Assembly (NCBI RefSeq): GCF_006345805.1 | Contig: NW_021834779.1 | Coordinates: 1-26,463, forward strand | Direction: 5' to 3' | DNA length: 26,463 bases | Source of the DNA: Octopus sinensis | Taxonomy: Eukaryota | In this document: piece after piece, positions 1,590-25,592 of the stretch | Layout of the letters: each line of letters opens with the position of its first letter | How positions within the stretch are numbered: the first letter of the stretch is position 1 | Position numbers and translations under genes: made by a program | The notes under the pieces: model-generated | Databases searched by the model: none | Seen by the model: the letters and a program-made list of their open reading frames with translations, nothing else | What the model was told of the DNA's origin: nothing

Positions 1590-2224
1590 ATGTAATGCAG
1601 TTTGAAGTAATTGTATTACAATGACAACTGCAGTTGTGTTGTTAATGGTGGAAGTGATGGCTAGATCTCTCGATCCTCCAGTGTCCCAGTCCCTGTGTAT
1701 ATACAACATGGCAGACATTTTAGATATTATCCTTACCCTGTCTTTCATTAGAAACACAAATAATATAAATGTTATAATGAATATGAAAAGATAATAAAGA
1801 GAAAGAGAGAGAGGGAGACTTACCTGCATTGTTTAATCCTTCACTGTAGTTGTGTGTGATGGATGATGTGTATCCTGCTGTAGTGTTCCACTCCAACTGC
1901 TGCTGCTGTAGTGGTATTATAGTGGTACTGCTGCTGTTGTAGTAGTGTTCCTGTGTTACTGCTCCTGCTGCTGCTGTTCCTGTGTAACTGCTGATATAAT
2001 AGTGTGTGACAGTTGCTGTATGTAGTGGGAGGTGATGTTAGCCAGATGCTGGTGTGTGCTAGTTACAACTCTATGTCCTCCACACACACACACACCACAA
2101 TTGTGTGTATGATGAACAAAGAAAAAAGCTATCAGCCTCACTTTCAATATTGAAAGAAATAGAGAAAATCTCTCTCATCCAATAGGAAATTACTGCAATG
2201 ATGTCTGTGTCACACAAACACATC
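1590..2224 (-). promoter_or_regulatory. Conserved unit block, copy 1: candidate promoter plus leader exon (donor at 1824|1823) for the next Pcdh gene beyond the left edge
   Basis: Near-identical to three other copies. CCAAT 2179-2183, palindrome CTTTCAATATTGAAAG 2141-2156, TG and CAG repeats, ATGCAG|GTAAGT donor, second donor-like CAGG|GTAAGG at 1737|1736. The function is inferred. Confidence 0.55.
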
Positions 2225-3126
2225 GAACAAGAGAATTCATGTTAAACAGAAGCAACTTCATTTTTTCTATTTAATAAAAACACTAAGTTTACATATTTGA
2301 TGTTATAAGATTTATAATAATATTTCTTGATATTTAATGGGTTATTATTAACTTCACTATGAGAATACATTTTCAGGATTTCTATCAGAAAGAAATTGAT
2401 TTTAGATGAAGTCTTCAAAGATTTCATTATTTAAGGAGTTTACAAGACTAGATAAACTGTAAACTAAGTAAATTCGGAGAAACAAAAAGTATTTTTGAGT
2501 TAAAAATTTAAAAAACACGATTTTCTGACACTTACTTTACTTTATACATAATAAAATATGAAACTTTTAGAATTTCTAAGAAAACTTCAAAAATGAATTG
2601 ACAGCTTTAGTATGTTACCAATATAGGTAACAGTACATTATTGGATGTTATGGGAGCTAACAATTACCTATACTTATATTAACTAGTAATTACCTATATT
2701 TATATTCATTAGTAATTAGTAAAATTCAATATACACTAAATATAAAAGAAGAGGAGAAACCAAAAGTGGAATATTTTAAATGAAAGCAAACAATTTATGG
2801 TAGAATTGATATCAAACCAAAAGACACAACAACTAAACATTCTAGGATGACTCAAACAAATTTACCTATGTTTAGTGAAATGTCTATACTAAGACTGAGA
2901 GGAAAATTACTATTTTATAATAGTGGATTATAGTAAGTAGGGTAGGGACTTTGTGATAGGTAATGAATCAGAGATGTAAATTAGCAGTAATAATGGATGC
3001 CACAGGTAGGCTCTTTAAGTGTGACGTGTGAAAGAAACATAGAGTTGATATTTTTACATGAATATAAAGTATTGTATAAGATTTGGTATGTGAGAGAATC
3101 ATTTAACAATAGTCATGGAACATCTA

Positions 3127-3206
3127 CTATGTTGGCTGTAGATAGGTATCTTGTATTTGTTGTCCCTTTAGTATTGTGGCTGCAACTGGATTGTCATTGG
3201 TATATT
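3127..3206 (-). CDS. Pcdh: Protocadherin A, last coding exon (EYTNDNPVAATILKGQQIQDTYLQPT*)
   Basis: Acceptor TTTTGCAG|AA. Phase 1 matches the exon-2 donor and gives the longest frame, ending TAG TAG. Conserved in B and C. Confidence 0.7.
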
Positions 3207-3370
3207 CTGCAAAATATCAAATATACAAACACAAATTACATTTCAATATAACAACTCCAATATATAAAGATACAAACATTGATCTTATATTACACTAAGC
3301 ATAACATTATATATTGTCCTACAGTAATAAAGGCAATTACATTTATATGTTATGTTTTGATAAAAGTTAC

Positions 3371-3515
3371 CTGGTTCTGCAGGTATCTCATCATATGGTT
3401 TAGTCTTGCCATTACTCTTGCTAGCTTCTCTGTCCTTTTGGGATGTTAAGGTGTCACTGTTGTAAGACATGATGGAACTGGTGCGACGTCCTTGACTATG
3501 GATTGAATCACATCT
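3371..3515 (-). CDS. Pcdh: Protocadherin A, cytoplasmic exon (RCDSIHSQGRRTSS...PYDEIPAEP)
   Basis: Acceptor TTTTCTAATCAACAG|AGA (phase 0), donor CCAG|GTAACT (phase 1), 145 nt. The peptide is identical in A, B and C. Confidence 0.8.
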
Positions 3516-3879
3516 CTGTTGATTAGAAAAAAAAGCAGAAGAAACATTCACATTTCATTTCTAGAATGTTCGTGGTAAGACTAAGAAAGGAATACTTTTA
3601 TGGAGTTGAAATGCTATAATTAAATTTTTTAACTAATAAAAATAAACTGGAATTCACAATTAAATAAAATGAAAATATTGTTCAATGAAATACTTATATG
3701 CAAATTTTAAATGGGTATTACTAGTAAAAAGTAAAATTATGAAACATCTTTCATCTTTTACGGAAAAAATATAAGAAAGGGATATGACATGTAAAAAAAA
3801 CAAGATGTATAGCATACGTTTTCAGGAATATTGTGAAGAAATGTGATGCAACAACTGGATTGTTTCAAAATATATTTAC

Positions 3880-6274
3880 CTGAGGCACAGGTGGAAGTCT
3901 CCTTTGTGTTGTTGAGAATTTCCACTCATCTGGTGTCTGTTCCATCTCCAGAAAAAACTGACTTTTAGATTTTATTGTCTGAAGATTTCGGTTAAATATC
4001 TCTTCTGCATTTCTCGTTATTGCAACAGGATTGTTAGTCTGATACAGTAATTGTCTCATCTCAGTCTGAGAGAGAAAGTTGGGATTCTCTGCTGTTGTGG
4101 GTGAGTTATTTGTGTGATTAATACATCTGAAAACACACAGTGTTATGGACACTACAATAGCCACAGATAGTATTACAGCTGCTGCTACAATGATAATTAC
4201 CCAAGTCATATTCAGGTCGTGACCAGACTGGAATGGCACAGCAGTCAACATTGGAGATGTATCATTACTAACAAACAGTGTTAGTATGATAGCAGTTGTT
4301 GCTGATTGAACTGGAGTACCACCGTCTTTCACTATAAACTGCAGCTCATATGTTCCTGCATCATTTTGGTAAACTGTGCGAGAGAAAGATAACACACCAG
4401 TGTGTGAGTTCACTGTAAACAGGTTTTATCATTGGATCTCAGTATTCCATATGTGAGGAAAGCATTGTTTCCAGTGTCTTTGTCAGATGCTCTCAGAATT
4501 GTGATGTCCTTCTTACTGTGTGGATGGTAGTGGACATCGAGATTGTAAGGGTCATTATTAGGAAACGTAAAATACGGAGCATTATCATTTTTATCTAGAA
4601 TCTCAATAACAATATTGCAGTGTCACTGAGAGAAGGTGTTCCATTATCTTTCACTAAAACCTTGAACTTATAGATGTCTTTCATTTCTCGATCTATTGGT
4701 TGTGATGTAGAAATAAATCCATATTTTGTCAGTTGGAAAGGAATGTTATCATTGTTGTTATCATTGATGATAGAATATGTAAGTTGGCCTCCATCTTCAA
4801 GATCTGGGTCTGTAGCATTGATGAAGCCAATAGGGAAGTCAACTTTCTGGTTTTCATAGGTGAGGAATTGGAATGTTTCTTTGGTAAAATGTGGTTCTAC
4901 ATCATTGACATCAGTTACTTTGACAGAGAAATATTTTTTACTTTCTAGTTGAGGTGACCCCATGTCATGACACACAATAGATGCTTTATAGTGGTCCCTT
5001 ATCTCTCTGTCAAGGTGGCCCTTAACAATCATTTTATATTCTTTAGAATCTATTTTGGCAAGTTTAAATTTATCATGTTTTAAATCACAGATAACCTCAC
5101 CATTAGGTCCACTATCAGTGTCAGTGACCATAACATAAGCTATAAAACTATCTACTTCACTGTCTTCTGAAACTGCAGCTGAGCTCTCTGATAAAGGAGA
5201 TACAAAATCTATATTTATCAATGGAGCATTATTCTGGTTATTAACTATATGAATCTGAACTGCTGCAACAGATTTTTTTGGTGGTTTTCCTCCATCCCTT
5301 GCTTCAATAAATAACTTATAATACTGCATTTTACTAAAATGAAAGCTGTCATGTAAAAATAAATCTCCAGTTTTCTTATCTAATACAAAATATTTCTGGA
5401 TATTTCGAGATGTTTTATGGTTGAAATGATACGAAATCCTTCCATTGTCTCCAGAATCTTTATCTGTGGCCTTTAAAGTAAAAATTGGTAAATGTCTTTG
5501 ATGTGAATTACTTACAGATGTGTTGTACAGGTCGTGTGAAAATACAGGTGTGTTATCATTGACATCAGTTACAGATATGTGTACCTTGAGTGTAGCTGTT
5601 TTGGGAGGATTCCCTCCATCTTTAGCTTCCAAGGTTAACATGTATGAGTCTTTTACTTCCCTGTCTAACTTATCTTCAAGAATTATTTCAGGTGTGAAAA
5701 TACCTTTGTGTTTTGTGACAGAGAGTGAAAATGGTTCTCTTTTACTTTTCTTGATCATATATGTAATTTGGGAATTTTTTATTGAAATATCTTCATCAAT
5801 GGCATTTAAAAGTGGGATTTTAGTACCTTTAAAATCTCTCTCTAAAAACTTTATTGTGATTTCATTCTGTGGAAATTCTGGAGAATGGTCATTGATGTCA
5901 TCTATTAATATTTTAATTTTTAGAATCTTCATAAATGTTTTTCCTTTTCTCACTGCTACTTTAACTATTCTGGAACATTCTTTGTTGTATGTACACAGGG
6001 ACTCTGCATCCAGTGTCTGAGTTGTGTATAGTTTTCCTGAGTTGGTGACATTAAATAAGTGAGAACCACTCTCGACTGTCCTTTGTAGTTGTGTAAATGT
6101 AATGAGAGTGTGTTGTTGATGTGTGAGAGGGTGTGATAAGTTAGAGTCAACAGCAATGTCTCCTATATAGGTGTGAGGTCTGTCTTCTTCCTTGACATGG
6201 TATGTAATATCTATGGACAGTACAAGGGTGATCAGTAAATGTAGAAGACACAGTAGACCAATATATGCTGTCAT
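3880..6274 (-). CDS. Pcdh: Protocadherin A, large exon (signal peptide, EC1-EC6, TM, juxtamembrane), with two 1-nt deletions as assembled
   Basis: Cadherin motifs (DINDHSPEF, LDRE, DVNDNTPVF, AxDxD, DGGxP), EC1 C-X5-C, TM WVIIIVAAAVILSVAIVVSITLCVF, donor CCTCAG|GTAAAT. It is 2395 nt vs 2397 in C, with deletions at ~4617 (GG>G) and ~4424-4427 (T5>T4). Could be a pseudogene or an assembly error. Confidence 0.9.
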
Positions 6275-6432
6275 GTCTGGAATTCTTCATCACATTTCAG
6301 CAGGAGAAATTGCTACAAAACATGAGAAATACATTTAAAGTTTATTTATAATTCAACAAATCTAATTATATTTACAATAATCACTGTGACACATCTATTT
6401 CTATCTGGAAACGTGTTCCATTTGTCAAAATT

Positions 6433-8019
6433 GAACGTGGAGCAAAAAAAGGTACTTTTTACACAGTTTTTTTAAATATGTTTCCAAAAATATATTTTTC
6501 ATTGCAAAATCCTTTATAAACAACTGTGTTAAAATCTGAAGTTCTTAAATATACATCTTCAGGCTCCACAGCCCACGTGAAATTTTGAATAATGAGCAAA
6601 AAATCAATTTATAACACATTTGCATTCCTCATTTTATTTTTTATATTCATTGTTACAAATTGATTTTCTTTCGCGAAATTATTTAAAAACAAGAGTGTTA
6701 AAATCTCAAGGTCTACAATTTATATCTTCAGGGTCCACCACACACTTGAAATTTCGAAATTATGTGAAAGAAATAGACTTTGTGACTTTGTTTCCTTTAT
6801 TATTTTTAATACTAGGTCACTGAATATATGTGTTACATGAGGTCTAGATCACACACACATTAAAATAAAATTACATATAAACCAATTTTTGATTCTTGAC
6901 ACATTTTGGTGATAAAAATATTTCCAATAAAAAATGTCAAATAAATCTTTTGTTGCATTTTTCTTAAACACATTACACTGTTTGAAATGATGGAACATTT
7001 TTTCTATTTCTCCCAGATTTTAGTAATGCTTGATACTTTAGATAAAAGTTCAAGATTTTTAGTTTAACTGACTCAATTGTAACACAAGGGATGGATGCCT
7101 TTTGCCAAAGAAGTATTATCTTTTCTGCCTCAATCTCGAAAATTTGTTTAAATGAAGGATCTTTCTTAACTATATTCTTTTCTTTATCTTGTTCAAATAA
7201 AACACATTTTAGTATGTCCCACCTAGTTGGCAAAACTCACTTGCTAAGATCATATGGAGTACCAAATATTGGGCATTCAATATCATGGTGCGTTATTGGC
7301 TTACGAGTCATCACTAAATGTAAACAACACTAAATTTAACGTGATCGTTAATTTTAATACAATGGCCTAAAGTCAAGGTACAAAGCAGAAAACTTCACAC
7401 GTACCATGTACATCCACACACAATGACTGCTGCAGTGGCACTGGAGAGAAGTTCACACTCCCGTTCTCTATATAGTCAGTGCGAACCTCAAGATATTAAT
7501 CAATTGTATTGAAACTTGGTATGCAACCTCTTAAGGATACTATATTTACTGTTTTGCATTTTGCTATGTAGAAATATATATACATTACGACTTATAATCG
7601 ATGAAATCCAAAATTTGACCAAAAATAGCGATTTTTAAATTTTTCAATTGTGTTGCGGAGCCTGAAAAGCATATTTAATCGCAATGTTCTTTATACACTT
7701 TTCTTTTTAACCTAATTCACAACAAAATATCTATTTCTTTATTACGCATAAGGGGCTAAACACAGAGGGGACAGACAAGGACAGACATAGGTATTAAGTC
7801 GATTACATCAATCCCAGTGCATAACTGGTACTTAATTTATCGACCCCGAAAGGATGAAAGGCAAAGTCGACTTCGGCGGAATTTGAACTCACAACGTAAC
7901 GACAGACGAAATACGGCTACGCATTTCGCCCGGCATGCTAACGTTTCTGCCACCTCACTGCAACAAAATATCGATTCTTGGTTACCAATTTCGAAAGTTG
8001 CACTTTTCGCTCCACCCTA
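6433..8019 (-). mobile_element. Decayed DNA transposon (possibly hAT-related) with imperfect TIRs
   Basis: Left end GAACGTGGAGCAAAAAAAGGTACTTTT resembles the right-end reverse complement TAGGGTGGAGCGAAAAGTGCAACTTTC. Internal ORF remnant 6973-7233 (PTRWDIL...W.KASIP...KI) resembles transposase N-termini as I recall them. A ~70-100 bp direct repeat has period 169 (6526, 6695). Family assignment is uncertain. Confidence 0.5.
7735..7961 (-). mobile_element. tRNA-derived SINE nested in the DNA transposon
   Basis: Same head and body as 981-1208 (B-box GAGTTCAAATTCC) but a different 3' tail. Confidence 0.8.
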
Positions 8020-8617
8020 CTGAATAGTCTTCCGTGATCTAACAATACATAACGAGAGTTATCTCCCTCGAATAAACCTCACTCATTTATCTTAATTATT
8101 GTGTTGTTTATCTAGTCTCAATGTTTTACGTTGTCTCTCAGAAAATTCTGTTGTTGGATTAAACGTTAGCAATCATGTTTTAGGTTTAATGTTCATAATT
8201 TATCAATAGATTAATGTATTTCTTCAAAAATATATCTATACTGAAATAATAAAACACTATATTAAAAATGAGTATCAAAGTGAGATATGACATGTCTGGA
8301 GCTCAATTTAAATTGCTTGTCCCAACCCTCTGACCGATTACAGAAACTATTTGATAAAAATATCTACCGTCACAATCCTAACGATACAGTTACTTTTTCC
8401 TGTTCCGAGAACAATTTTGGAATGAATGTTTCTGCATTTCATTTTAATGTGGAAACAGGATGGTGGAGAGTAAAGAATCGAGGGAACTGTCTAATCCAAT
8501 ATGTACATATGATGATAAAGATGAGGAGATAGAAAATATAAATTCTCAACCCAAATGTCACCATGTTTGAACAGTTATAAGGATTGCTACATGCTGGAAT
8601 ATAACATTTACTCTCTG

Positions 8618-9165
8618 TCATCATCATCGTCGTTTAACGTCTGCTTTCCATGCTAGCATGGGTTGGACGGTTTGACTGGGGTCTGGGAAGCCAGGAGACT
8701 GCACCAGGCTCCAGTCTGATCTGGCAGTGTTTCTACAGCTGGGTGCCCTTCCTAACGCCAACCACTCCAAGAGTGCAGTGGGTACTTTTTTACGAGTCAC
8801 TGGCACAGGGGTCACAGGGGGCTGACATTGACTGAGATTGGATGGTGCTTTTTACGTGACACCGGCATGGAAGCGAGTCAAGGTGACATATCATCTTTGT
8901 CGTTTAACGTTCGCTTTCCATGCTGGCATGGGTTGGACAGTTTGACTGAGGTCTGGAGAGCCAGAAGGCTGCACCAGGCTCCAATCTGATCTGGCAAAGT
9001 TTCTACAACTGGATGCCCTTCCTAACGCCAACCACTCCGAGTGTAGTGGGTGATTTTACATGCCACTGGCATGAAAGCCAGTCAGGCAGTTCTGGCAATG
9101 ACCATGCTCAAAAGGTGTTTTTATGTGCTACCTGCACAGGAGCCAGTCTGGCGGCACTGGCAATG
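8618..9165 (-). mobile_element. Two tandem RTE-like retroelement 3' ends (8618-8889, 8890-9165)
   Basis: Both contain GCCCTTCCTAACGCCAACCACTCC and, on the minus strand, end in CCAACCCATGC.AGCATGGAAAGC..ACGTTAAACGAC(GAT)n. Confidence 0.7.
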
Positions 9166-9390
9166 AAATATACAGCTTAATTGAAGAAAGAGAACAAAAA
9201 ACGTAGTGACAATTGTGATTGACTTAGAAACAAGAGAGATCTTTTCATCAAATGAAGAAATAATCTCACAATATTTACATGCTAAAGGAAATAAATGTAT
9301 AATATTTGTTTGCAGTAAGGGACTATTTTATATAAAGTAAAAGAATTATGAATATTTTTTTTACCACAATTATTTACATAATTACAACAC

Positions 9391-9475
9391 GAGCTCCGTC
9401 CAAACCGTGCTGTCCGTCCAACCCGTGCTAGCACGGAAAACGGACGTTAAACGATGATGATGATGATGATGATGA
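9391..9475 (+). mobile_element. RTE-like 3' end with (GAT)n tail
   Basis: GTCCAACCCGTGCTAGCACGGAAAACGGACGTTAAACG(ATG)n, inverted relative to 8618-9165. Confidence 0.7.
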
Positions 9476-9960
9476 GATCAGAGAAATAACTGCAATGTGA
9501 CAATGGCATCAGTGATAAATAATGGTGTGATGTACTGGATGCTGTATACAAAATAACTCTTTAAATAATTGAAAAGTGGCTCTGAACGAAAAAACACCCT
9601 AATGACAATTTATGCTATTTCCAGAGATTTGTGAAAGCTGAAAAATAGGTGTCAGCTGAGCCTAAAACTGAATCAACAACACTAGACAGAGTTGACAATC
9701 ATCAAAGTCCTTTCCTTTGGACAATAATATTTGCTTCATGTCAATGTGCCATTCTGTTACCAGTAGGTGAAAGGATATGTTTAGCAATGAGAATTACATT
9801 GATAGGAGAAGGCAGAAAAGCTCTGTGAATTATCCACTAAATCAATAAAAAACTACATAGTCTTTTCATTGCTTTACATACAAATATGTATTTTTCAGAA
9901 AATATAACAAGACAATCTCTAGTTGACTTCTCTTACTCTCAACCTCTTTTGTAAAAGCAG

Positions 9961-9992
9961 CTTAGGATTAGAATATTTATTCTAATCCTAAG
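9961..9992. repeat. 32-bp near-perfect palindrome
   Basis: CTTAGGATTAGAATA-tt-TATTCTAATCCTAAG: perfect 15-bp arms with a 2-nt spacer. Confidence 0.95.
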
Positions 9993-10534
9993 AAATGCAT
10001 TTAAGAAGTACTAAAAATTATTAACAGAATATTATTGGTACGAAATCTCACACAGATGGATTAAAAGATGTTGATAAATTTGAAAGAAGATATTTAGTAG
10101 CCATATTTGTCCAATATCTTTAAGGAATACTTCATATTTAATTTGAATGAAATATTTAATTTATAGAAAAAATAATTATGAGAATTTGGTACAAAGGTGT
10201 TAATGACATACACAAAACAGTGTGTAAAATTTTGTGTAATAATTCACAATACATTTTATTCATAAGTAGATGGGGATTATTGAATATTTCGCTGGAAGTT
10301 AATAATGAAAACAAAAAATTGATAAGTATCAGACAGAGATATTTAGAACTATTTATTAAGTGAAGTATAATGATGATAATTAAACCTCCATTTATATGTT
10401 TCGTATTATACTGCTAAATATAATAAATTTCTGTGATGTTTTGGTATATTATAATAACAACTACATTAATGTGATGTATGATAGTTTGTTGAAAGACGAT
10501 GATATTATTTCTGATTCTCAAAATTCATCAATTG

Positions 10535-10643
10535 TTGTCAGAGTTAATAGATTTTAACAACAGTTGACAATATCGTCAGTTTCTAACTCACAATAAATAC
10601 CTTAAATAACAAATCTACATTAAATAATATTTATCAACATCTT
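10535..10643. other. Conserved non-coding element, copy 2 of 3
   Basis: Aligns with 17833-17941 and 1-62 while the neighbouring intron sequence has diverged. Confidence 0.65.
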
Positions 10644-10660
10644 AATTATAAAATATAAAC

Positions 10661-10844
10661 CTTTCTACCATAAGCACAAAGCCTGAAATTTTGGATGGGT
10701 AAGGGTTAATTGATTACATCAACCCCACTGCTTATCTGGTACTTATTTCATCCTGGTAGTCTTTGAAATCAGAAGGTAAAGACAAATAAAATGCCATAAA
10801 GCATTTTCTGTTGTCTGCCAATAATTCTGCAAACTTGCCACCTT
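10661..10844 (-). mobile_element. Degenerate tRNA-derived SINE
   Basis: Similar to 994-1208 with an internal deletion, and its flanks are homologous to those of the 994-1208 copy. Confidence 0.7.
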
Positions 10845-11164
10845 GAAAATAATATCAGTAATAACAATAAACATCCTTAGTTTATTATTTACAATATATA
10901 TATGTATATCTATAAAATGGATATTAATAATCTATCACAGTACATTGAAAATTTAATTAGTGAGTTATTACAACAAAACAGATATAAACTATACTGACAT
11001 ACATTAGTCAACACCCAGTCTTACTGGTTAGTGATGTCTTCTGACAGTGAAATAAAATATATATATATACAACTAGTTTAGACTATATTAGACCAATATT
11101 CTTTATAGCAATATATATGTTTTTTAATATTTCTTGTATAATGTTGTCTTGTGTGATTCTGACA

Positions 11165-11820
11165 TTAAAAGGTGTAATCCAGATTGAAGTAATTGCATTA
11201 CAATGTCTACTGCAGTTGTGTTGTTAATGGTGGAAGTGATGGCTAGATCTCTCGATCCTCCACTGTCCCAGTCCCTGTATATATACAACATGGCAGACAT
11301 TTTAGATATTATCCTTACCCTGTCTTTCATTAGAAACACAAATAATATAAATGTTATAATGAATATGAAAAGATAATAAGAGAGAGAGAGAGAGAGAGAG
11401 AGACTTACCTGCATTGTTTAATCCTTCACTGTAGTTGTGTGTGATGGATGATGTGTATCCTGCTGTAGTGTTCCACTCCAACTACTGCTGCTGCTGCTGT
11501 AGTGGTATTATAGTGGTACTGCTGCTGTTGTAGTAGTGTTCCTGTGTTACTGCTGCTGCTGCTGCTGTTCCTGTGTAACTGCTGATATAATAGTGTGACA
11601 GTTGCTGTATGTAGTGGGAGGTGAGATGTTAGCCAGATGCTGGTGTGTGCTAGTTACAACTCTATGTCCTCCACACACACACACACACACACAATTGTGT
11701 GTATGATGAACAAAGAAAAAAGCTATCAGCCTCACTTTCAATATTGAAAGAAATATAGAAAATCTCTCTCATCCAATAGGAAATTATTGCAATGTTGTCT
11801 GTGTCACACAAACACATCAA
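11165..11820 (-). promoter_or_regulatory. Conserved unit block, copy 2: candidate promoter plus leader exon of Pcdh A (donor 11409|11408)
   Basis: CCAAT 11773-11777, palindrome 11735-11750, (CA)n, CAG repeats, ATGCAG|GTAAGT. The matching acceptor is TTTTGTAG|CAATTT at 6313|6312. Confidence 0.55.
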
Positions 11821-12462: not shown

Positions 12463-12542
12463 CTATGTTGGCTGTAGATAGGTATCTTGTATTTGTTGTC
12501 CCTTTAGTATTGTGGATGCAACTGGATTGTCATTGGTATATT
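12463..12542 (-). CDS. Pcdh: Protocadherin B, last coding exon
   Basis: Acceptor TTTTACAG|AA, 80 coding nt to TAG, one amino-acid change vs A (VAST vs VAAT). Confidence 0.7.
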
Positions 12543-13481: not shown

Positions 13482-13613
13482 ATCAATAATCTTTTATAAA
13501 GAAGATATAAGGAATATGATATGACATGTAAATGAAATAAAATATATAAAACATGTTTTCAGAAATATTGATCACAAATATCTAACAAGAAAATTATTTT
13601 AAAATATATTTAC

Positions 13614-16012
13614 CTGAGGCACAGGTGGAAGTCTCCTCTGTGTTGTTGAGAATTTCCACTCATCTGGTGTCTGTTCCATCTCCAGAAAAAACTGACTTTT
13701 AGATTTTATTGTCTGAAGATTTCGGTTAAATATCTCTTCTGCATTTCTCGTTATTGCAACAGGATTGTTAGTCTGATACAGTAATTGTCTCATCTCAGTC
13801 TGAGAGAGAAAGTTGGGATTCTCTGCTGTTGTGGGTGAGTTATTTGTGTGATTAATACATCTGAAAACACACAGTGTTATGGACACTACAATAGCCACAG
13901 ATAGTATTACAGCTGCTGCTACAATGATAATTACCCAAGTCATATTCAGGTCGTGACCAGACTGGAATGGCACAGCAGTCAACATTGGAGATGTATCATT
14001 ACTAACAACAGTGTTAGTATGATAGCAGTTGTTGCTGATTGAACTGGAGTACCACCGTCTTTCACTATAAACTGCAGCTCATATGTTCCTGCATCATTTT
14101 GGTAAACTGTGCGAGAGAAAGATAACACACCAGTGTGTGAGTTCACTGTAAACAGGTTTTTATCATTGGATCTCAGTATTCCATATGTGAGGAAAGCATT
14201 GTTTCCAGTGTCTTTGTCAGATGCTCTCAGAATTGTGATGTCCTTCTTACTGTGTGGATGGTAGTGGACATCGAGATTGTAAGGGTCATTATTAGGAAAC
14301 GTAAAATACGGAGCATTATCATTTTTATCTAGAATCTCAATAACAATATTGGCAGTGTCATTGAGAGAAGGTGTTCCATTATCTTTCACTAAAACCTTGA
14401 ACTTATAGATGTCTTTCATTTCTCGATCTATTGGTTGTGATGTAGAAATGAATCCATATTTTGTCAGTTGGAAAGGAATGTTATCATTGTTGTTATCATT
14501 GATGATAGAATATGTAAGTTGGCCTCCATCTCCAAGATCAGGGTCAGTAGCATTGATGAAGCCAATAGGGAAGTCAACTTTCTGGTTTTCATAGGTGAGG
14601 AATTGGAATGCCTCTTTGGTAAAATGTGGTTCTACATCATTGACATCAGTTACTTTGACAGAGAAATATTTTTTACTTTCTAGTTGAGGTGACCCCATGT
14701 CATGACACACAATAGATACTTTATAGTGGTCCCTTATTTCTCTGTCAAGATGACCCTTAACAATCATTTTATATTCTTTAGAATCTATTTTGGCAAGTTT
14801 AAACTTATCATGTTTTAAATCACAGATAACCTCACCATTAGGTCCATTATCGGTGTCAGTGACCATAACATAAGCTATAAAACTACCAATTTTACTTGCT
14901 TCTGAAACTGCTGCTGAGCTCTCTGATAAAGGAGATACAAAATCTATATTTATCAATGGAGCATTATTCTGGTTATTAATAATGTGAATCTGGACTTTGG
15001 TTACAGAACTTAAATGTGGATTTCCTTCATCCTGTGCTTCAATAAATAATTTATATGATTGCTTTTTACTAAATTGAAAGCTGTCATGTAAAAACAGATC
15101 TCCAGTCTTCTTATTTAATACAAAATATTTCTGGATATTTCGAGAGGTTTTGTGGTTGAAATGGTAAGAAATCTTTCCATTGTCTCCAGAATCTTTATCT
15201 GTGGCCTTTAAAGTAAAAATTGGCAAATGTCTTTGATGTGAATTACTTATAGAGATGTTGTAAAGTTTCTGTGAAAATACAGGTACATTATCATTGACAT
15301 CTGTCACAGATATGTGTACCTTGAGTATAGCTGTTTTGGGAGGGTTTCCTCCATCTTTAGCTTCCAGAGTCAACATATATGAATCTTTGAGTTCCCTGTC
15401 TAATTTGTCTCCTAAAACTAGAGCTGGTATGAAAACACCATCATATCGCTTTTCAACTGAGAGAGAAAATGGTTCTCTTTTACTTTTCTTAATCATATAT
15501 GTTATTTGTGAATTCTGTATTGAAATATCTTGATCAATGGCATTTAAAAGTGAGATTTTAGTACCTTGAAGGTGACTCTCAAGAAATTCAATTTGAACTT
15601 CATTCTTTGGGAATTCTGGTGAGTGGTCATTGATGTCTTCTATTAATATTTTTATCCTTAGAATCTTCATAAAAGTTTCTTCTTTCCTCACTGCTACTTT
15701 GACAATTTTGGAACATTCCTTGTTGTATGTACACAGAGACTCAGCATCCAGTGTTTGAGTAGTGTATAGTTTTCCTGAGTTGGTGACATTAAATAAGTGA
15801 GAACCACTCTCGACTGTCCTTTGTAGTTGTGTAAATGTAATGAGAGTGTGTTGTTGATGTGTGAGAGGGTGTGATAAGTTGGAGTCAACAGCAATGTCTC
15901 CTATATAGGTGTGAGGTCTGCCTTCTTCCTTGACATAGTATGTAATATCTATGGACAGTACAAGGGTGATCAGTAAATGTAGAAGACACAGTAGACCAAT
16001 ATATGCTGTCAT
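13614..16012 (-). CDS. Pcdh: Protocadherin B, large exon, with one 1-nt deletion as assembled just after EC6
   Basis: Same architecture as A and C, 2399 nt vs 2400 expected (B has one extra codon in EC2). AAA>AA at 14007-14008 shifts the frame before the TM. Donor CCTCAG|GTAAAT. Confidence 0.9.
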
Positions 16013-16394
16013 GTCTGGAATTCTTCATCACATTTGAGCAAGAGAAATTGCTATAAAGACAACAAAGATATTTAAATGAAATTAAATTTAAAAAACAATA
16101 ATTTTTCTAAATGTTATTGCTATTTCTTAATAAAGTCCGGTAGACACAACTGAATAATTTAAAATTAGCTTCTGTGATACAGGTTGGAAGCATTAGAAAG
16201 TATAATATTGGTTTATGGAAATCAATTGGTTCATGCTGAAAACATTGGTTCATGCTGATCAAAATACGAACTAAACAAAAGGTTAATAATATTCCTTTTA
16301 TGCCAGGAATACATCTCTTTATAGAGAAGCACCATGTTGATAGTGACAAAGAACAAGATCAAATGTGTAATGCAACTATACTTAAGAGAAGTAC

Positions 16395-16630
16395 TTCATC
16401 ATCACCAACACCATAGTCGTCATTGTTGGTGGCGGCAGTGGACTCATTGTCATCAGCATTATCTAATGTCCATTTTCCATGCTGGCATATATTGGGCAGT
16501 TTGATAAGATCTGAAGAGTGACAGAGCGGCATCGGGCCCTAATATCACATGGTTTCTATGGCTTGATGCCCTTCTTAATGCTAAATTTTTTATAGTGTAT
16601 ACTGGATGCCTTTCCTGATATTGGTACCAG
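16395..16630 (-). mobile_element. Old RTE-like 3' end fragment
   Basis: TTTTCCATGCTGGCAT and GATGCCCTTCTTAATGC resemble the 8618-9165 copies, with a degenerate CAT-repeat tail. Confidence 0.5.
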
Positions 16631-17832
16631 TGACGTTGTTAAGTAACTTAAAAAAACAAAGAAAAAAATAAACCTCCTTAATTGAGTAGGAGTGTAGCAA
16701 AATTTAGAAATTAAACAAGATTAGTATTAAAAACTACTCTGATGAAGCAGTGCTAAGGTACAGAGGAAGGCGAGGGGAACAATTAGGTATGATCCACAGA
16801 TCTATTGTTGCAGTTACACCATGTCTCCATCTAGCTGAGAACCAGACTTTGATATGTGATGTAAAGTGATGGTCTGAGCCAATGCAAGAACTTTTATATG
16901 GTCATTCTGTCTGTGGTAGTAAAAGGCAGCCCAACCTTCAAATCTGATTCTACAGTCTCACAAATAGATGAATATACTTGATAAAGTAATCCTGAATATA
17001 ATAAACCAGAAATGATGACAGAATGTTGACAGCTTGAATAATGCAGACTCTGACAAGGAAATATTAAAACCCTTTAAATTTACATCACAGAGAAAGATTT
17101 TAGTCGTTGGAGATTAATGATATATACAATATGAAAACAACAGCAATTCTACTCTAAGCTGATGGTAGGTCCTAATCAAAAGAGAAGTAAAATATATTGT
17201 GAAATTAATGAACAGTAGTCTCTCGAGATATTTAATTAATGAAGTTTAGGTTTGCAGAGCGAAAGATTAAGGACATGATAACCTAAATGTACTTTATTGT
17301 GTCTTGTTGGTTGGAATTTCTCTCTTTTGTTACCGTATTTCTGTTGGAATACATTGCTTTTGTTTCGATCAATTTCAAAACTACAGCAAAAATTTAGTAA
17401 AATAACTTTGTCAAAATGAATCTGGTGATTGGAACACAAATCAAGATGAAATTTGATGGAAAGCTTTAATTTAAAGCACTTTAAGAAGGAAGTTAATATC
17501 ATAAAACCTGGCACAATTGGAGGCAAGTTGGTATCAGAGAGGGTGAAAGACATTTGATAATAATATACCTGTTTCACAGAAATGTAGGATAAGTGTATCT
17601 AAGAAACCTAATAACCTGGATAGAAGATGTCTTGATTTATTTCACAAATAACTGACAAAGAATAGATTATAAAATTATGTGGAAATATTTTACAAAAATG
17701 GGAATTATAAAATGGTGGAGTGATATGTTTTTGATGGAAAAATATGTATAATTATCTTCACAAAATATGCAGATAACTTTCTTATCAAATTAATTGTAAT
17801 AAAAGTAATTTAATCCCTATTTAATCCATCTC

Positions 17833-17941
17833 TTGTCAGGATTAATATATTTTAACAACAGATGACAATATCATCAATTTATATCTCCTGACAAATATCT
17901 TAAATAACAAATCTACACTAAATAATATTTATCAACATCTT
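17833..17941. other. Conserved non-coding element, copy 3 of 3
   Basis: Aligns with 10535-10643 and 1-62. Confidence 0.65.
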
Positions 17942-18097
17942 TTTTACATAACTTTGGCTTTGTAAATGAACAATCTCATGTGTTTATTTAAATGGTCTAC
18001 AAATGCATACAGCGAGTTTCTTTGCTCTAGAAGTCGGAAAGATACTTGGCAGGAAATGGAAATGAAAACTGAAATTAGGACAATACATAATAATATT

Positions 18098-18172
18098 GAT
18101 GATGATGATGATGATGATAAATATTCTTGATCTATTCTATACAAAAGAATACATAACAGATATTCAAAAGGG

Positions 18173-18216
<44 letters not shown>

Positions 18217-18217
18217 T
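18098..18217. repeat. (GAT)n and (TA)n(CA)n microsatellites
   Basis: Read directly from the sequence. Confidence 0.85.
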
Positions 18218-18434
18218 ACGGATAAGGTGATCTGTTAGAGTTAATTGAAGCTACAGCAAATTAAGATTTAATTAGCGAACTATTACAACAACAAAGATAC
18301 AAGCAACATCGATAGACATTATTAACACCTAGTTTCATTGGGTACAAATCAATGTTTTGTGACTTTAAATGATTATATACTTTACACAAATGTATATAAT
18401 ATATATTGTAGCGATACATATGTGATTCTGAGAT

Positions 18435-18931
18435 TAAAAGATGTAATCCAGTTCAAAGTAATTGTATTACTGCAGTTATTGTTGTTAATGGTGGCAGTGA
18501 TGGCTAGATCTCTCGATCCTCCACTGTCCCAGTCCCTGTATATATACAACATGGCAGACATTTTAGATATTATCCTTACCCTGTCTTTCATTAGAAACAC
18601 AAATAATATAAATGTTATAATGAATATGAAAAGATAATAAAGAGAAGAAAGGGAGAGAGAGAGACTTACCTGCATTGTTTAATCCTTCACTGTAGTTGTG
18701 TGTGATGGATGATGTGTATCCTGCTGTAGTGTTCCACTCCAACTGCTGCTACTGCTGCTGTAGTGGTATTATAGTGGTACTGCTGCTGTTGTAGTAGTGT
18801 TCCTGTGTTACTGCTGCTGCTGCTGCTGTTCCTGTGTAACTGCTGATATAATAGTGTGACAGTTGCTGTATGTAGTGGGAGGTGAGATGTTAGCCAGATG
18901 CTGGTGTGTGCTAGTTACAACTCTATGTCCT

Positions 18932-18964
<33 letters not shown>

Positions 18965-19088
18965 TGTGTGTATGATGAACAAAGAAAAAAGCTATCAGCC
19001 TCACTTTCAATATTGAAAGAAATATAGAAAATCTCTCTCATCCAATAGGAAATTACTGCAATGTGGTCTGTGTCACACAAACACATCA
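18435..19088 (-). promoter_or_regulatory. Conserved unit block, copy 3: candidate promoter plus leader exon of Pcdh B (donor 18670|18669)
   Basis: CCAAT 19042-19046, palindrome 19004-19019, longest (CA)n, ATGCAG|GTAAGT. The acceptor is CTTTATAG|CAATTT at 16051|16050. Confidence 0.55.
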
Positions 19089-19731
19089 AATAAAAGAATT
19101 CATATTACACTGAAGCAGCTTGATAATTTACAGGGGTATAATTAGTAATATGACTTTATTATATATTTAGTCTTAGTAAAAAGGAATTTCTATTAAAAAA
19201 TTTATAATTTTATAATTATATTTCTTAGTATCATGCAAGTTGTGAGATGACAATTCAGTAATTTCTATGAAAAAAATTTGACTAAACTTTCAAGGGAAAA
19301 TAGAGAATGTTTTATCAATGTGAGGGATAAATTACTTCTTGAGTTGATACAATGAGAAAAAGCTAAGAGAAAAGTTGTAAATAAAGGTAAAACAAATGAA
19401 AGTACATTTTAGAATTGGTGTCAAATGAAAACAACATAATTAAACTTCCGAGGATGACTCAGACTAATTTATCTATGCTTAGTGAAATGTCTATACTAAA
19501 ACTGACGGGAAAATAACTATAATAATTAACTATGGTAATGTAGAGTTGGGTGTTTGTAACAATTAATTTACCACAGATGGAAATTAGGGGTCATAAGAGA
19601 TGCCGCTGTAAGGCCCCTTACGTGTGTGATGGATGAAAGAAACATAGAGTTGATATTTTTATATGAATATAAAGTATTGTATAAGATTTGGTGTGAGAGG
19701 GAATCATTTAACAATAGTCATGGAACATCTA

Positions 19732-19811
19732 CTATGTTGGCTGTAGATAGGTATCTTGTATTTGTTGTCCCTTTAGTATTGTGGCTGCCACTGGATTGTC
19801 ATTGGTATATT
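19732..19811 (-). CDS. Pcdh: Protocadherin C, last coding exon
   Basis: Acceptor TTTTGCAG|AA, 80 coding nt to TAG. Confidence 0.7.
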
Positions 19812-19975: not shown

Positions 19976-20120
19976 CTGGTTCTGCAGGTATCTCATCATA
20001 TGGTTTAGTCTTGCCATTACTCTTGCTAGCTTCTCTGTCCTTTTGGGATGTTAAGGTGTCACTGTTGTAAGACATAATGGAACTGGTGCGACGTTCTTGA
20101 CTATGGATTGAGTCACATCT
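19976..20120 (-). CDS. Pcdh: Protocadherin C, cytoplasmic exon (145 nt)
   Basis: Acceptor CTAATCAACAG|AGA, donor CCAG|GTAACT. Confidence 0.8.
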
Positions 20121-20849
20121 CTGTTGATTAGAAAACAGAGTGAAACATAATGTTAAAAAGAGAAAAACATCTACATTTGCATTCTAGTATATTCCCTGTG
20201 TTATAGAAAAAAGGAACATTTTATTTTTCAAAATAAAAAATATTATAATTAAATATTTTCTTATTTAATTAAAATGCATTAGAGTCAAAAATAAATCATA
20301 ACAAATGTATAGGTTAGATATTAATGCACAAATTTTAAATATATCTATTTGGTTAAGTATAAAATGAAGAAAAAATCATTGAATCTTTCACAAAATAAAT
20401 GCAGTATATTTTTGTAATAAATCACTTAAATGTACAAAATACACGAAATAGAATATAATATGTAACAAATACAAGGTTCGGCTGAACACTTCGTAGGCTC
20501 AACAAGATCCTCACATAGAATGTGACCAAACAAGGTTTATTTTGCAACATAATCACAGAAAAAGGGATCTTGCATTAATACAGAGTTAGATCACTCCTAA
20601 TAAAACAGTCTTTATATTAAGAGTATTGTATTTCTATAATAGGCATTGTGACCGCTTTGCTATCACTAAATAAAGAATAATTAATTCAGAATGTCAAAAT
20701 AAACTATGACATTTGATTATTAAAAACAATACATGTACATTAGAATCTAAAGTTGATATTTTATAGAAATATTTGAACATACATCACTAATGGAAAGAAT
20801 ACTCTTGTATTTAAAATCATAAGGATATCAAAAACAAGATAATATTTAC

Positions 20850-23246
20850 CTGAGGCACAGGTGGAAGTCTCCTTTGTGTTGTTGAGAATTTCCACTCATC
20901 TGGTGTCTGTTCCATCTCCAGAAAAAACTGACTTTTAGATTTTATTGTCTGAAGATTTCGGTTAAATATCTCTTCTGCATTTCTCGTTATTGCAACAGGA
21001 TTGTTAGTCTGATACAGTAATTGTCTCATCTCAGTCTGAGAGAGAAAGTTGGGATTCTCTGCTGTTGTGGGTGAGTTATTCGTGTGATTAATACATCTGA
21101 AAACACACAGTGTTATGGACACTACAATAGCCACAGATAGTATTACAGCTGCTGCTACAATGATAATTACCCAAGTCATATTCAGGTCGTGACCAGACTG
21201 GAATGGCACAGCAGTCAACATTGGAGATGTATCATTACTAACAAACAGTGTTAGTATGATAGCAGTTGTTGCTGATTGAACTGGAGTACCACCGTCTTTC
21301 ACTATAAACTGCAGCTCATATGTTCCTGCATCATTTTGGTAAACTGTGCGAGAGAAAGATAACACACCAGTGTGTGAGTTCACTGTAAACAGGTTTTTAT
21401 CATTGGATCTCAGTATTCCATATGTGAGGAAAGCATTGTTTCCAGTGTCTTTGTCAGATGCTCTCAGAATTGTGATGTCCTTCTTACTGTGTGGATGGTA
21501 GTGGACATCGAGATTGTAAGGGTCATTATTAGGAAACGTAAAATACGGAGCATTATCATTTTTATCTAGAATCTCAATAACAATATTGGCAGTGTCATTG
21601 AGAGAAGGTGTTCCATTATCTTTCACTAAAACGTTGAACTTATAGATATCTTTCATTTCTCGATCTATTGATTGTGATGTAGAAATGAATCCATATTTGG
21701 TCAGTTGGAAAGGAATGTTATCATTGTTGTTATCATTGATGATAGAATATGTAAGTTGGCCTCCATCTCCAAGATCAGGGTCTGTAGCATTGATGAAGCC
21801 AATAGGGAAGTCAACTTTCTGGTTTTCGTAGGTGAGGAATTGGAATGTCTCTTTGGTAAAATGTGGTTCTACATCATTGACATCAGTTACTTTGACAGAG
21901 AAATATTTTTTACTTTCTAGTTGAGGTGACCCCATGTCATGACACACAATAGATACTTTATAGTGGTCCCTTATTTCTCTGTCAAGATGGCCCTTAACAA
22001 TCATTTTATATTCTTTAGAATCTATTTTGGCAAGTTTAAATTTATCATGTTTTAAATCACAGATAACCTCACCATTAGGTCCACTATCAGTGTCAGTGAC
22101 CATAACATAAGCTATAAAACTACCAATTTTACTTGCTTCAGAAACTGCTGCTGAACTCTCTGTTAAAGGAGATACAAAATCTATATTTATCAATGGAGCA
22201 GTATTCTGGTTATTAATAATGTGAATCTGGACTTTGGTTAAAGAACTTAAGGGTGGATTTCCTCCATCTCGTGCTTCAATAAATAATTTATAAGACTGCA
22301 TTTTAGTAAACTGAAAATTGTCATGTAAAAACAAATCTCCAGTGTTCTTATCTAAAACAAAATATTTCTGGATATTTCGAGATGTTTTATGGTTGAAATG
22401 ATAAGAAATCTTTCCATTGTCTCCAGAATCTTGATCTGAAGCTTTTAAAGTAAGAATTGGTAAATGTCTTTGATGTGAATTACTTATAGAGATGTTGTAG
22501 ATTTCCTGTGGAAATACAGGTGTATTATCATTAACATCTGTTACAGATATGTGTACTTTGAGTGAAGCTGTTTTTGGTGGGTTCCCTCCATCTTTAGCTT
22601 CTAGTATCAACATATAATAGTCATTGAGTTCCCTGTCTAATCTATCTTCTAGAATTAGCGCAGGTATGAAAATACCCTTCTGTTTTGTGACAGAGAGAGA
22701 AAATGGTTCGCTTTTACTTTTTTTAATTATATATGTAATTTGAGAATTTTTGATTGAAATATCTTTATCAATTGCATTCAGAAGAGGGATTTTGCTTCCT
22801 TTACTCTCTCTTTCTGAAAAATGAATCTTAACTTCATTTTGTGGAAATTCTGGAGAATGGTCATTGATGTCTTCTATTAATATTTTTATTTTGAGAATTT
22901 TCATAAATGCTTCTTCTTTCCTCACTGCTACTTTAACTATTCTGGAACATTCCCTGTTGTATGTACACAGAGACTCAGCATCCAGTGTTTGAGTAGTGTA
23001 TAGTTTTCCTGAGTTGGTGACATTAAATAAGTGAGAACCACTCTCGACTGTCCTTTGTAGTTGTGTAAATGTAATGAGAGTGTGTTGTTGATGTGTGAGA
23101 GGGTGTGATAAGTTAGAGTCAACAGCAATGTCTCCTATATAGGTGTGAAGTCTGTCTTCTTCATTGACATGGTATATAATATCTATGGACAGTACAAGGG
23201 TGATCAGTAAATGTAGAAGACACAGTAGACCAATATATGCTGTCAT
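20850..23246 (-). CDS. Pcdh: Protocadherin C, intact large exon (799 codons; predicted spliced protein 873 aa)
   Basis: Uninterrupted ORF with signal peptide, six cadherin repeats, TM helix and donor CCTCAG|GTAAAT (phase 0). Confidence 0.95.
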
Positions 23247-23580
23247 GTCTGGGATTCTTCATCACATTTCAGCAGGAGAAATTGCTATAAAAGACAACAA
23301 ATATTTAAACATTAAGTACAATAAAATAAGTTCATTTGAAGTTATAATAACCATTATATAAATGATTATTGATTGTATGTCTTTTACATGTGCTCTAAAT
23401 AATTCAAAATGTTTCTTTTAATCTAACAAGCTAAGTGACAATATATAGATGATGCCGCTTCTTTGGAAAAAGGCAACAACCTTTCTGTGTTTAGAATTGC
23501 ATTTAGAATGTTTTGGCATGACAAGTTTCATAATTTACTATTGAGAGAGTACTTAGAAAGGGACAACGTCTTGATATTGA

Positions 23581-23792
23581 TTTCTAATTATGGCACAAGG
23601 CTAGCAGTTTTGGGGGAGGGGTTAAGTTGCTTACATCGATCCCAGTGCTCACCTGGTACTTATTTTATTAACCCCAAAAGGATGAAAGGCAAAGTCAAAC
23701 CTGGTGGAATTTGAACTCAGAATGTAAAGGCAGACGAAATACTGCTGAGCAGTTTGCTTGGTAAGATAATAATTCTAGCAGCATATTGCCTC
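23581..23792 (-). mobile_element. tRNA-derived SINE (same family as 981-1208)
   Basis: AAGGATGAAAGGCAAAGTCAA...GGAATTTGAACTCAGAATGTAAAG on the plus strand. Confidence 0.75.
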
Positions 23793-23929
23793 ACAGTAGA
23801 TTGATACTGAAATATCACATCTTTGTTGACTCCATGAGTATCTGATGAGGATATTTCATTGAGATATTTTGTAACAAATGTTTAATCTTGTTCAGGCTCC
23901 ATGTCTTCCTTAGAAACGATTTCAAAACA

Positions 23930-24030
23930 GACACGGAGCCTGAACAGCCTTTCAGCTGGTCAGTTCCTACCAGACCATCCAACCCATACTAGCATGAAAA
24001 ATGGACATCAAATGATGATGACAATGGTGA
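23930..24030 (+). mobile_element. Degenerate RTE-like 3' end
   Basis: CATCCAACCCATACTAGCATGAAAAATGGACATCAAATGATGATGA matches the 9391-9475 terminus. Confidence 0.55.
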
Positions 24031-24954
24031 TTAGATGTAATCAATTTACAGTTAGATATTTAGAATTTAATCCACACTGTAGTTATATGTTGGAATATTA
24101 ACTGATAATGCTGTTAATGATTCTATTTTTGGTTGAAAGAATAAATGTAATGCAAAACATATCTTTATATTGTAGAAGTGTATGTAATACCTCTCTGTAG
24201 AAATATGAAGCCAAGTTCCATTCCTCAATACACACACCAATATAAACACCTTCAGGCACACATATATATTACAAGCAAGCAAAACAGTCAATATTCTTCT
24301 GGATAGGTAACAACACTGGGTGGACAAAGTAAACATATTGGAGGTAGACAAAAGGATAGATAAAGAAACTGAGGCAGTCAGAGAAGATACCAGAACAATT
24401 ACAATTAGACTTGTCATAGACAACATGACTGCAGCCATTATCTCTTCACTTAAACTGCAAACAAGAGGAACAGATGAACAACAGGATTGTTTCAAAAAAC
24501 TCTCTTATGGATCATCATGATAACAAAATAAAAATAAGAAAACAGTGGAAATTTTACCGGTGAGTGTGTTACATTATAAGGCACAAAAAGAAAATGATTC
24601 TCCCCAAAATGAGTTTATATTTCACACAAAATATTTTGAATAAAAAAGCTAGACAAGATTATATTTATCATCCATTGTAATGATAATGGTGACGAGGAAC
24701 ATTCTTTGCTTATTATGCACAAATGAATATATAATGTATATATATATATATATATATAGGGATATTACTAATGTTAGAATTCATAAATTATTAACACTGT
24801 CTTATTGGCTATAATCAATGTTTTTTGATAGTTAAATAAATGCACACACACACATACACGCACACACATATATCAGTTTGGACTATATTAAACAATTCTA
24901 TATAAGATATATAGTTTAATATCCTTTGTATAATGTTGTCTTATGTGATTTTGA

Positions 24955-25592
24955 TATTAAAAGGTGTAATCCAGATTGAAGTAATTGTATTACAATGACT
25001 ACTGCAGCTGTTGTTAATGGTGGAAGTGATGGCTAGATCTCTCGATCCTCCACTGTCCCAGTCCCTGTATATATACAACATGGCAGACATTTTAGATATT
25101 ATCCTTACCCTGTCTTTCACTAGAAACACAAATAATATAAATGTTATAATGAATATGAAAAGATAATAAAGAGAAAGAGAGAGAGAGAGAGACTTACCTG
25201 CATTGTTTAATCCTTCACTGTAGTTGTGTGTGATGGATGATGTGTATCCTGCTGTAGTGTTCCACTCCAACTGCTGCTGCTGCTGTAGTGGTATTATAGT
25301 GGTACTGCTGCTGTTGTAGTAGTGTTCCTGTGTTACTGCTGCTGCTGTTCCTGTGTAACTGCTGATATAATAGTGTGACAGTTGCTGTATGTAGTGGGAG
25401 GTGAGATGTTAGCCAGATGCTGGTGTGTGCTAGTTACAACCCTATGTCCTCCACACACACACACACAATTGTGTGTATGATGAACAAAGAAAAAAGCTAT
25501 CAGCCTCACTTTCAATATTGAAAGAAATATAGAAAATCTCTCTCATCCAATAGGAAATTACTGCAATGTTGTCTGTGTCACACAAACACATC
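24955..25592 (-). promoter_or_regulatory. Conserved unit block, copy 4: candidate promoter plus leader exon of Pcdh C (donor 25198|25197)
   Basis: CCAAT 25547-25551, palindrome 25509-25524, ATGCAG|GTAAGT. The acceptor is CTTTTATAG|CAATTT at 23285|23284. Confidence 0.55.

Follow-up and report, generated by a model that had tools for sequence, protein, structure and literature searches.

The unplaced Octopus sinensis scaffold examined here in full (26,463 bp; hereafter the window) contains protocadherin (Pcdh) genes arrayed head to tail, with all genes and elements on the minus strand; a conserved block, block P, recurs upstream of the large coding exons. Our analysis indicates that block P probably serves its downstream gene as a 5′ module, in which a proximal promoter is followed by a leader exon and by the first part of a long intron in the 5′ untranslated region (UTR). 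The leader exon itself, together with the junction that links its donor to an acceptor 38 nt before the start codon of the large exon (the −38 acceptor), we regard as very likely. Taking copy 3 of the block as the example, a promoter-like zone of ~120 nt (19105-18977), with an inverted CCAAT box, a GATA-like TGATAG, and a SOX-like CTTTGTT, would bind factors at these candidate sites, and transcription would start just downstream of it; a leader exon, non-coding and no longer than ~310 nt, would end in AACAATGCAG|GTAAGT at 18670, followed by ~250 nt of conserved intron start with a possibly splicing-regulatory element. The leader would then be spliced over a long, transposon-tolerant 5′-UTR intron to the −38 acceptor of the large exon, after which come the same gene's two small coding exons. 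An upstream gene running on past its end would join a donor within its stop codon (TA|GT) to an internal acceptor of the leader, giving chimeric transcripts. The block is repeated because the array grew by whole-gene duplication and gene conversion, and no cluster-wide control element is needed to explain it.

Comparing unit with unit, we found three conserved segments, namely block P (~700 bp), the large exon (~2.5 kb), and a segment of ~0.5-0.7 kb with the two small exons, the interval between block P and the large exon being mostly unalignable; the repeat length is 7-10 kb, with one complete Pcdh gene in each repeat. Further loci comprised L001 and L005 from the O. sinensis chromosome, L002 and L008 from Argonauta hians, and L003 and L004 with diverged Pcdh subfamilies of the same cluster, the array of the window belonging to subfamily 1. 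Block P occurs once per gene, always oriented alike; it is seen four times in the window, at 24875-25610 (copy 4, upstream of gene C), 18419-19105 (copy 3, gene B), 11075-11833 (copy 2, gene A), and 1363-2243 (copy 1, whose matching large exon lies beyond the scaffold end), and four times in L001 and L005.

Splicing of the Leader Exon

Both ends of the proposed junction are precisely kept. On the acceptor side, the leader begins right after a YAG, at 23284 in gene C (ATG at 23246), 16050 in gene B (ATG at 16012), and 6312 in gene A (ATG at 6274), a distance of exactly 38 nt in each, and similarity between copies falls off ~30-70 nt upstream of this acceptor. On the donor side, all four copies of block P show the same exon end and GTAAGT, with last exon bases at 25198, 18670, 11409, and 1824. 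The −38 YAG acceptor is exact in all three Argonauta genes of L002, and across the genera the donor reads GTAAGT, GTATGT, or GTAAAT in 10 of 10 aligned copies, including two of a diverged subfamily; other Pcdh subfamilies have their acceptor at −22 or −44. The 5′-UTR introns thus delimited measure 1913 nt in gene C (23285-25197, GTAAGT...TTTTATAG), 2619 nt in gene B (16051-18669), and 5096 nt in gene A (6313-11408), the last being swollen by inserted and repeated sequence. Across 14 copies, the spacing from the core of the upstream zone to the donor is 253-322 nt, versus intron lengths of 1.8-11.2 kb. An earlier sequence-only reading of the window had placed a leader exon upstream of each gene, with CAG|GTAAGT joined to the −38 acceptor; Argonauta conservation and an annotated junction (below) bear this out, and its motif, donor, and acceptor coordinates, those of the three −38 acceptors included, are all correct. 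Its view that the block ends at the donor holds for the presence of that donor in all four copies, but conservation runs on for ~250 nt into the intron.

The donor-to-acceptor junction is present in the annotated model XP_029645448.2, a chromosomal paralog and cluster member of the closest homologue, whose 938 aa extend a normal Pcdh by a tail of 64 aa. Three window copies of block P match this tail at 95-98% (copy 1 at 82%); the match stops exactly at the block P donor and then runs into the leader of the next gene. At L005, the chain starts with an exon 3 whose donor, ACATA|GTAGAT, falls within the stop codon (~13166), and proceeds to an acceptor inside block P, CAGCAG|TTACACAGG (CAGCAG|TTACAC); it leaves by the block P donor, GCAG|GTAAGT, across an 11.1-kb intron and ends in the following gene's leader, at TAG|AAATTTCTCC, meeting a TGA 16 nt before the next ATG. 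The leader exon is non-coding, since the frame of this tail meets TAG stops in window copies 2 and 3, which likewise ruled out block P as protein-coding sequence; no homologues of the 64-aa tail were found. Searching transcript contigs for the Pcdh N-terminus gave five matches, none informative on the leader junction, and the reachable collections contained no contig of this subfamily. One of them, L007, is mRNA-like and was rejected as junction evidence because its Pcdh is only 49% identical; L006 is genomic.

The length of the putative leader exon varies between copies through microsatellite indels. The (GT)n runs at 18966-18933, 25471-25452, 11697-11672, and 2103-2082, as well as CAG runs at ~18830-18740, differ in length from copy to copy, and in the Argonauta leader exon (GT)n is nearly gone and the CAG repeats are largely replaced by TAC repeats.

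Conservation of Block P across Genera

In the window, the 16-bp palindrome CTTTCAATATTGAAAG occurs in four exact copies (25524-25509, 19019-19004, 11750-11735, and 2156-2141) against 0.06 expected, TGTTTGTGTGACACA also has four exact copies, and ATTGG is found in every block (25551, 19046, 11777, and 2183). The sequence-only reading had stressed this invariance, and all the motifs are indeed there; their invariance is uninformative, given that identity among window copies is 90-95% over the whole block, 92-94% in the coding exon, and 88-96% in the small introns. Because the entire block is equally similar, the excess over chance reflects recent tandem duplication or gene conversion rather than constraint specific to the motifs. 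The same figures would suit a block without any function, a mere tract of conversion and duplication no more alike than the adjacent small introns; cross-genus conservation contradicts that explanation, which we consider barely credible. Seven copies in Argonauta (L002 and L008) retain 64-81% identity, versus 84-87% for the coding exon, with the sub-elements in the same order, while the rest of the long 5′ intron gave no cross-genus match outside block P; diverged subfamilies, moreover, still have a recognizable exon 3′ end and donor. Block P is therefore under constraint.

A sliding Octopus-Argonauta comparison, in the coordinates of copy 3, divides the block into stretches of unequal conservation. 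The upstream zone (19100-18980) is 76-84% identical, the stretch at 18976-18890, with its (GT)n run, is weakly conserved (36-60%), and a patch around the internal acceptor (~18864-18817) reaches 68-76%; the variable CAG/TAC repeats at 18816-18770 score low, and the exon 3′ end (18766-18670) recovers to 68-80%. The best conserved stretch, at 84%, lies directly after the donor (18644-18595), and a later intronic motif (18526-18480) has 68%. The post-donor stretch consists of a CT-rich run and then TTATCTTTTCATATTCATTATAACATTTATATT, with equivalents at 25168-25134, 11378-11344, and 1796-1762, and it may be an intronic element of splicing control. In copy 3 the late motif falls at 18511-18483; in copy 4 a second conserved intronic piece occupies 25040-25012. 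The upstream zone of copy 4 spans 25610-25483, and the internal acceptor gives a first exon base at 25358, 18839, 11578, and 1987 in copies 4 to 1, respectively.

Of the motifs themselves, an alignment of nine copies (two Octopus, seven Argonauta) leaves a different selection from the one suggested by the window. ATTGG, which we take to be an inverted CCAAT box and a candidate site of the NF-Y type, survives in seven of the nine (both Octopus copies and five from Argonauta). The palindrome and TGTTTGTGTGACACA, which had been singled out alongside it, do not: the latter varies among the nine copies and is deleted in one, and the former is not symmetric in any of the seven Argonauta copies, with a C where a G is required. 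Since all seven have C there, a single change in the Octopus lineage made the palindrome, and the suggestion that it serves as a factor site is not supported. The best-kept sequence is instead AAAGTGAGGCTGATAGC, which includes TGATAG (18997 in copy 3), presumably a GATA-like candidate site; it is followed by CTTTGTT (18984 in copy 3), invariant in nine of nine and, we assume, a candidate site of the SOX type.

Assigning Block P to a Neighboring Gene

Which gene owns block P is a separate matter from its conservation. Similarity begins abruptly at the 5′ edge of the block in all window copies and in Argonauta, and conservation falls just downstream of the 120-nt upstream zone. On these grounds, the 5′ part of the block is plausibly a promoter, and on balance we lean toward transcription starting within it. 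The exon, for its part, appears from profile searches to be an old feature of gene structure in this Pcdh clade. A profile of its 3′ end and donor matches upstream of diverged Pcdh genes in L003 (E=2e-11 and 1e-8) and L004 (E=7e-4), and in the downstream region of L001 (E=9e-7). In L004 the homologue precedes the ATG by 1.7 kb, and the 10 kb upstream of this ATG are free of Pcdh coding sequence. Because such matches precede diverged Pcdh genes, that of L004 included, the leader exon would be an old clade feature that travels with the downstream gene.

Several observations weigh against assigning block P to the downstream gene. About 0.4-1 kb separates the block from the upstream stop codon, compared with 1.9-11 kb to the downstream ATG, so that position alone favors the upstream gene, the nearer of the two. 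There is no clear TATA box or initiator in block P, and a depletion of upstream ATGs, seen in the Octopus copies (1 vs ~4 expected), is absent from the diverged Argonauta copies, for which reason we discarded it as a 5′-UTR signature. The sole model that contains the leader exon has it as an internal exon, entered by read-through from exon 3 of the upstream gene. That its junctions rest on RNA-seq reads and not on ab initio prediction we infer from an 11-kb intron having been added for seven codons. Finally, the internal acceptor is conserved in Argonauta, so its internal use may exceed noise.

Taken further, these points would make block P a part of the upstream gene or its read-through transcripts and nothing else, its 5′ zone being distal 3′ UTR or termination sequence, its leader an internal or terminal non-coding exon, and productive mRNAs starting elsewhere. 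Much in the data agrees with such a reading. Besides the entry of XP_029645448.2 from the upstream exon 3 and the closeness to the upstream stop, the internal acceptor has kept its pyrimidine tract as well in Argonauta, and the stop-codon donor TA|GT exists in both genera: in the window it reads ACATA|GTAGAT at the stop codons 19732-19734, 12463-12465, and 3127-3129, and in Argonauta the GT is kept as TAGTAC or TAGTAT. Read-through in this family is also documented, as O. vulgaris PCDH gene models have been found fused by read-through transcripts (PMC9712504). In O. sinensis and O. bimaculoides, RefSeq contains fused multi-Pcdh models of 1794, 3146, 3333, 4355, 5049, and 5758 aa, the 3333-aa fusion lying at L005 25325-35309, which is consistent with widespread read-through transcription across Pcdh arrays. 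Yet a block serving the upstream gene alone sits poorly with what separates the two: the first ~120 nt past the upstream stop are conserved, then comes a variable, poorly conserved spacer up to block P, and no polyadenylation signal shared by the copies was found between stop codon and block. Nor does it account for the L004 leader homologue and donor, which precede a Pcdh with no Pcdh coding sequence 10 kb upstream, or for the large exon, which needs an upstream exon and has no other conserved candidate in the intron; translation of a downstream frame from a read-through mRNA would, besides, be inefficient. Read-through as the only use is the main rival of our preferred reading, and we give it a minor probability. 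The sequence-only reading had itself named transcription of the block only as the 3′ part of the upstream gene as a finding that would tell against it; XP_029645448.2 comes close to this by entering from exon 3, but sole use is not shown by it.

Other tests of ownership were set aside. A test at the edge of the array was not clean: after the last intact gene of L001, the unit at 13465-13695 has just 34 nt of block P fused to a decayed 3′ fragment of a large exon and is a deletion remnant of one unit. Testing block P for tree congruence with either neighboring gene was dropped, duplication and conversion tracts being uninformative on function.

Block P might also be a distal enhancer or boundary, or a separate non-coding RNA, with incidental splice sites. 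It would then be less surprising that conservation extends 250 nt past the donor, with the 50 nt after it the best conserved between genera, and that candidate GATA, SOX, and NF-Y sites group in the upstream zone. Against this, the donor and the −38 acceptor are co-conserved and joined in an annotated model, no Rfam family matches in the window, and no pairs were predicted in a consensus RNA structure around the donor; we judge the idea improbable. A 5′ module of the downstream gene, also entered by read-through from its neighbor, remains our preferred reading.

Comparison with Vertebrate Promoter Choice and Other Systems

The sequence-only reading had gone further and likened block P to the conserved sequence element (CSE) of vertebrate clustered Pcdh promoters, whose defining features are described elsewhere (PMC7811963), proposing that equivalent promoters compete through a factor that binds the palindrome. 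The likeness is that both are arrays of neuronal adhesion genes, set head to tail, with one conserved block upstream of each unit. Expression in octopus brain cells, in which each cell expresses on average ~19 of ~170 PCDH genes, some ubiquitous and others cell-type specific (PMC9712504), implies some selection among genes and to that extent agrees with it; the figure of ~19 genes per cell neither requires nor excludes promoter competition, and genes specific to cell types would fit deterministic control (PMC9712504).

The sequence of the block offers the comparison little. No CTCF-like or CGCT motif was found in block P; of three window matches to the CTCF consensus (at most two mismatches), none is inside it, and the nearest resemblance by our own reading of the alignment, CCAGCATCTGGC, is lost in Argonauta. 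A profile of the upstream zone matches units of subfamily 1 only, with E>1 in L003 and L004, so the zone goes undetected in two other subfamilies of the same cluster; by k-mer comparison, the upstream regions of six subfamily representatives share nothing of 10 nt or longer, only AT-rich 9-mers. The octopus zone is thus limited to one young subfamily, whereas the vertebrate element occurs in nearly all genes of the cluster, and between block P and the ATG comes an intron of 1.8-11.2 kb, whereas the vertebrate element precedes the ATG of its own exon at a short and fixed distance. Cephalopod PCDH diversity, furthermore, has been attributed to full gene duplication and gene conversion (PMC9068888), and, unlike vertebrate clustered Pcdh genes, those of octopus have their own 3′ exons and no shared constant exons (PMC9068888). 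Complete genes of this kind pose no structural need for choice. With the palindrome being Octopus-specific (C for G in 7 of 7 Argonauta copies), competition by way of a palindrome-binding factor seems to us quite improbable, and stochastic choice between promoters is likewise unsupported. Neither a cluster-wide promoter element nor an analogue of the vertebrate CSE is supported by these comparisons: there is no CTCF-like site, the zone belongs to a single subfamily, an intron separates it from the ATG, and each gene has its own 3′ exons.

Other systems offer further parallels. With its consensus donor, its acceptor shortly before the ATG, and an intron that tolerates insertions, the unit resembles an ordinary metazoan gene with a non-coding first exon and a long 5′-UTR intron; the candidate inverted CCAAT box ahead of the exon, within a short stretch of conserved sequence, would suit a TATA-less CCAAT promoter of the NF-Y type. 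By joining the upstream last coding exon to the next leader and large exon, XP_029645448.2 recalls conjoined or tandem-chimeric transcripts, from which it differs in having a donor within the stop codon and an acceptor within the leader exon, both kept in Argonauta, which is unusual for splicing noise. The shortened-Dscam arrays of chelicerates are likewise tandem adhesion-receptor units, each with its own 5′ end (PMC6339937), but they share downstream constant exons, whereas octopus units are complete genes.

An Upstream Reading Frame in the Leader

Once the leader exon is spliced, an ATG located 6 nt ahead of its donor begins a frame of 15 codons whose TGA overlaps the main ATG (ACATGA). In gene C the frame covers 25203-25198 and 23284-23243, and genes B and A have the same arrangement. 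All correctly paired Octopus copies (three from the window, L001, and three from L005) keep it open, at one length and with the same overlap, and it is open, read by hand, in the three Argonauta genes of L002; in L008, a stop interrupts the frame in one copy, and CTG replaces the ATG in another. The leader additionally contains an in-frame ATG-TGA-TGA and an out-of-frame ATG.

This invites a speculation, which we offer as an unlikely one, that the leader exon is doubly used and conserved in both capacities: as the first exon of its own gene and as a landing pad that captures upstream read-through via the stop-codon donor, with captured transcripts and the upstream reading frame coupling neighboring Pcdh promoters. 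If true, captured transcripts would end translation in the leader (at the TGA 16 nt before the next ATG), and the downstream gene would be transcribed without yielding protein; such transcriptional interference, based on splicing and translation, would sharpen which array members give protein in each neuron.

Gene Models and Intron Repeats

Gene C has an intact reading frame. Its large exon (20850-23284) comprises the 38-nt leader (23284-23247) and the coding sequence from the ATG at 23246, with a donor CAG|GTAAAT after 20850; the second coding exon, for the cytoplasmic domain, lies at 19976-20120, and the last at 19732-19811, its TAG stop (19734-19732) holding the TA|GT donor with 19733 as last exon base. 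Spliced (23246-20850, 20120-19976, and 19811-19732), these exons encode an 873-aa protocadherin with 93% identity to O. sinensis XP_029645453.1 over 100% of its length. Since gene C joins to a full-length match in this manner, every unit is complete as a gene, having a stop codon and two 3′ coding exons of its own. For this intact gene, the RefSeq model XP_036355791.1 (764 aa) lacks ~109 extracellular residues that the open reading frame (ORF) encodes (window 20817-23246), a gap that is probably a spurious annotation intron.

The large exons of gene B (13613-16050; leader 16050-16013, ATG 16012) and gene A (3877-6312; leader 6312-6275, ATG 6274), both with approximate 3′ ends, are frameshifted by deletions of 1 nt, near 14008 in gene B and near 4617 and 4427 in gene A. 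All fall in short homopolymers (CC, AAAAA, and TTT), and the two genes are either young pseudogenes or affected by long-read assembly errors. In the NCBI model of the broken gene B, XP_036355790.1, a fragment of the 5′-UTR intron resembling a short interspersed nuclear element (SINE), at 16532-16377, is used as an artificial coding first exon.

The introns contain further repeats. Compared with the paralogous intron C, intron A has ~1.1-1.4 kb extra, starting at a point ~70 nt from the acceptor on its upstream side. Still further up come SINE-like repeats (8618-8774, 8890-9044, and 9414-9466), which share the motif CCATGCTAGCATGGGTTGGACGG with the gene B fragment. The sequence-only reading had placed a transposon close to this acceptor; extra sequence is there, but the proximal insert is not confirmed as a transposon, ORFs in intron A, and likewise at 302-820, having no Pfam match. 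A 73-nt element of 70-74% identity recurs in every 5′-UTR intron (1-73, 10581-10653, 17879-17951, and 24615-24687), about 190-1300 nt downstream of block P, and a second repeat family occupies 1090-1202, 7846-7958, and 23674-23786.

Implications for Cephalopod Protocadherins

We found no published description, in the literature searched, of cephalopod Pcdh promoters or of how the ~170 protocadherin genes are regulated. For one subfamily, the present analysis adds a candidate promoter-like zone with sites of the NF-Y, GATA, and SOX types, a leader with a conserved upstream ATG, and a post-donor intronic element, and it defines exact splice junctions that can now be counted in existing RNA-seq. 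Overall, block P amounts to the usual 5′ end of genes duplicated in tandem, accompanied by an unusual, conserved read-through splice. The parallel with vertebrate promoter choice through CTCF and the CSE finds no sequence support, and the repetition of the block along the array is the outcome of whole-gene duplication.

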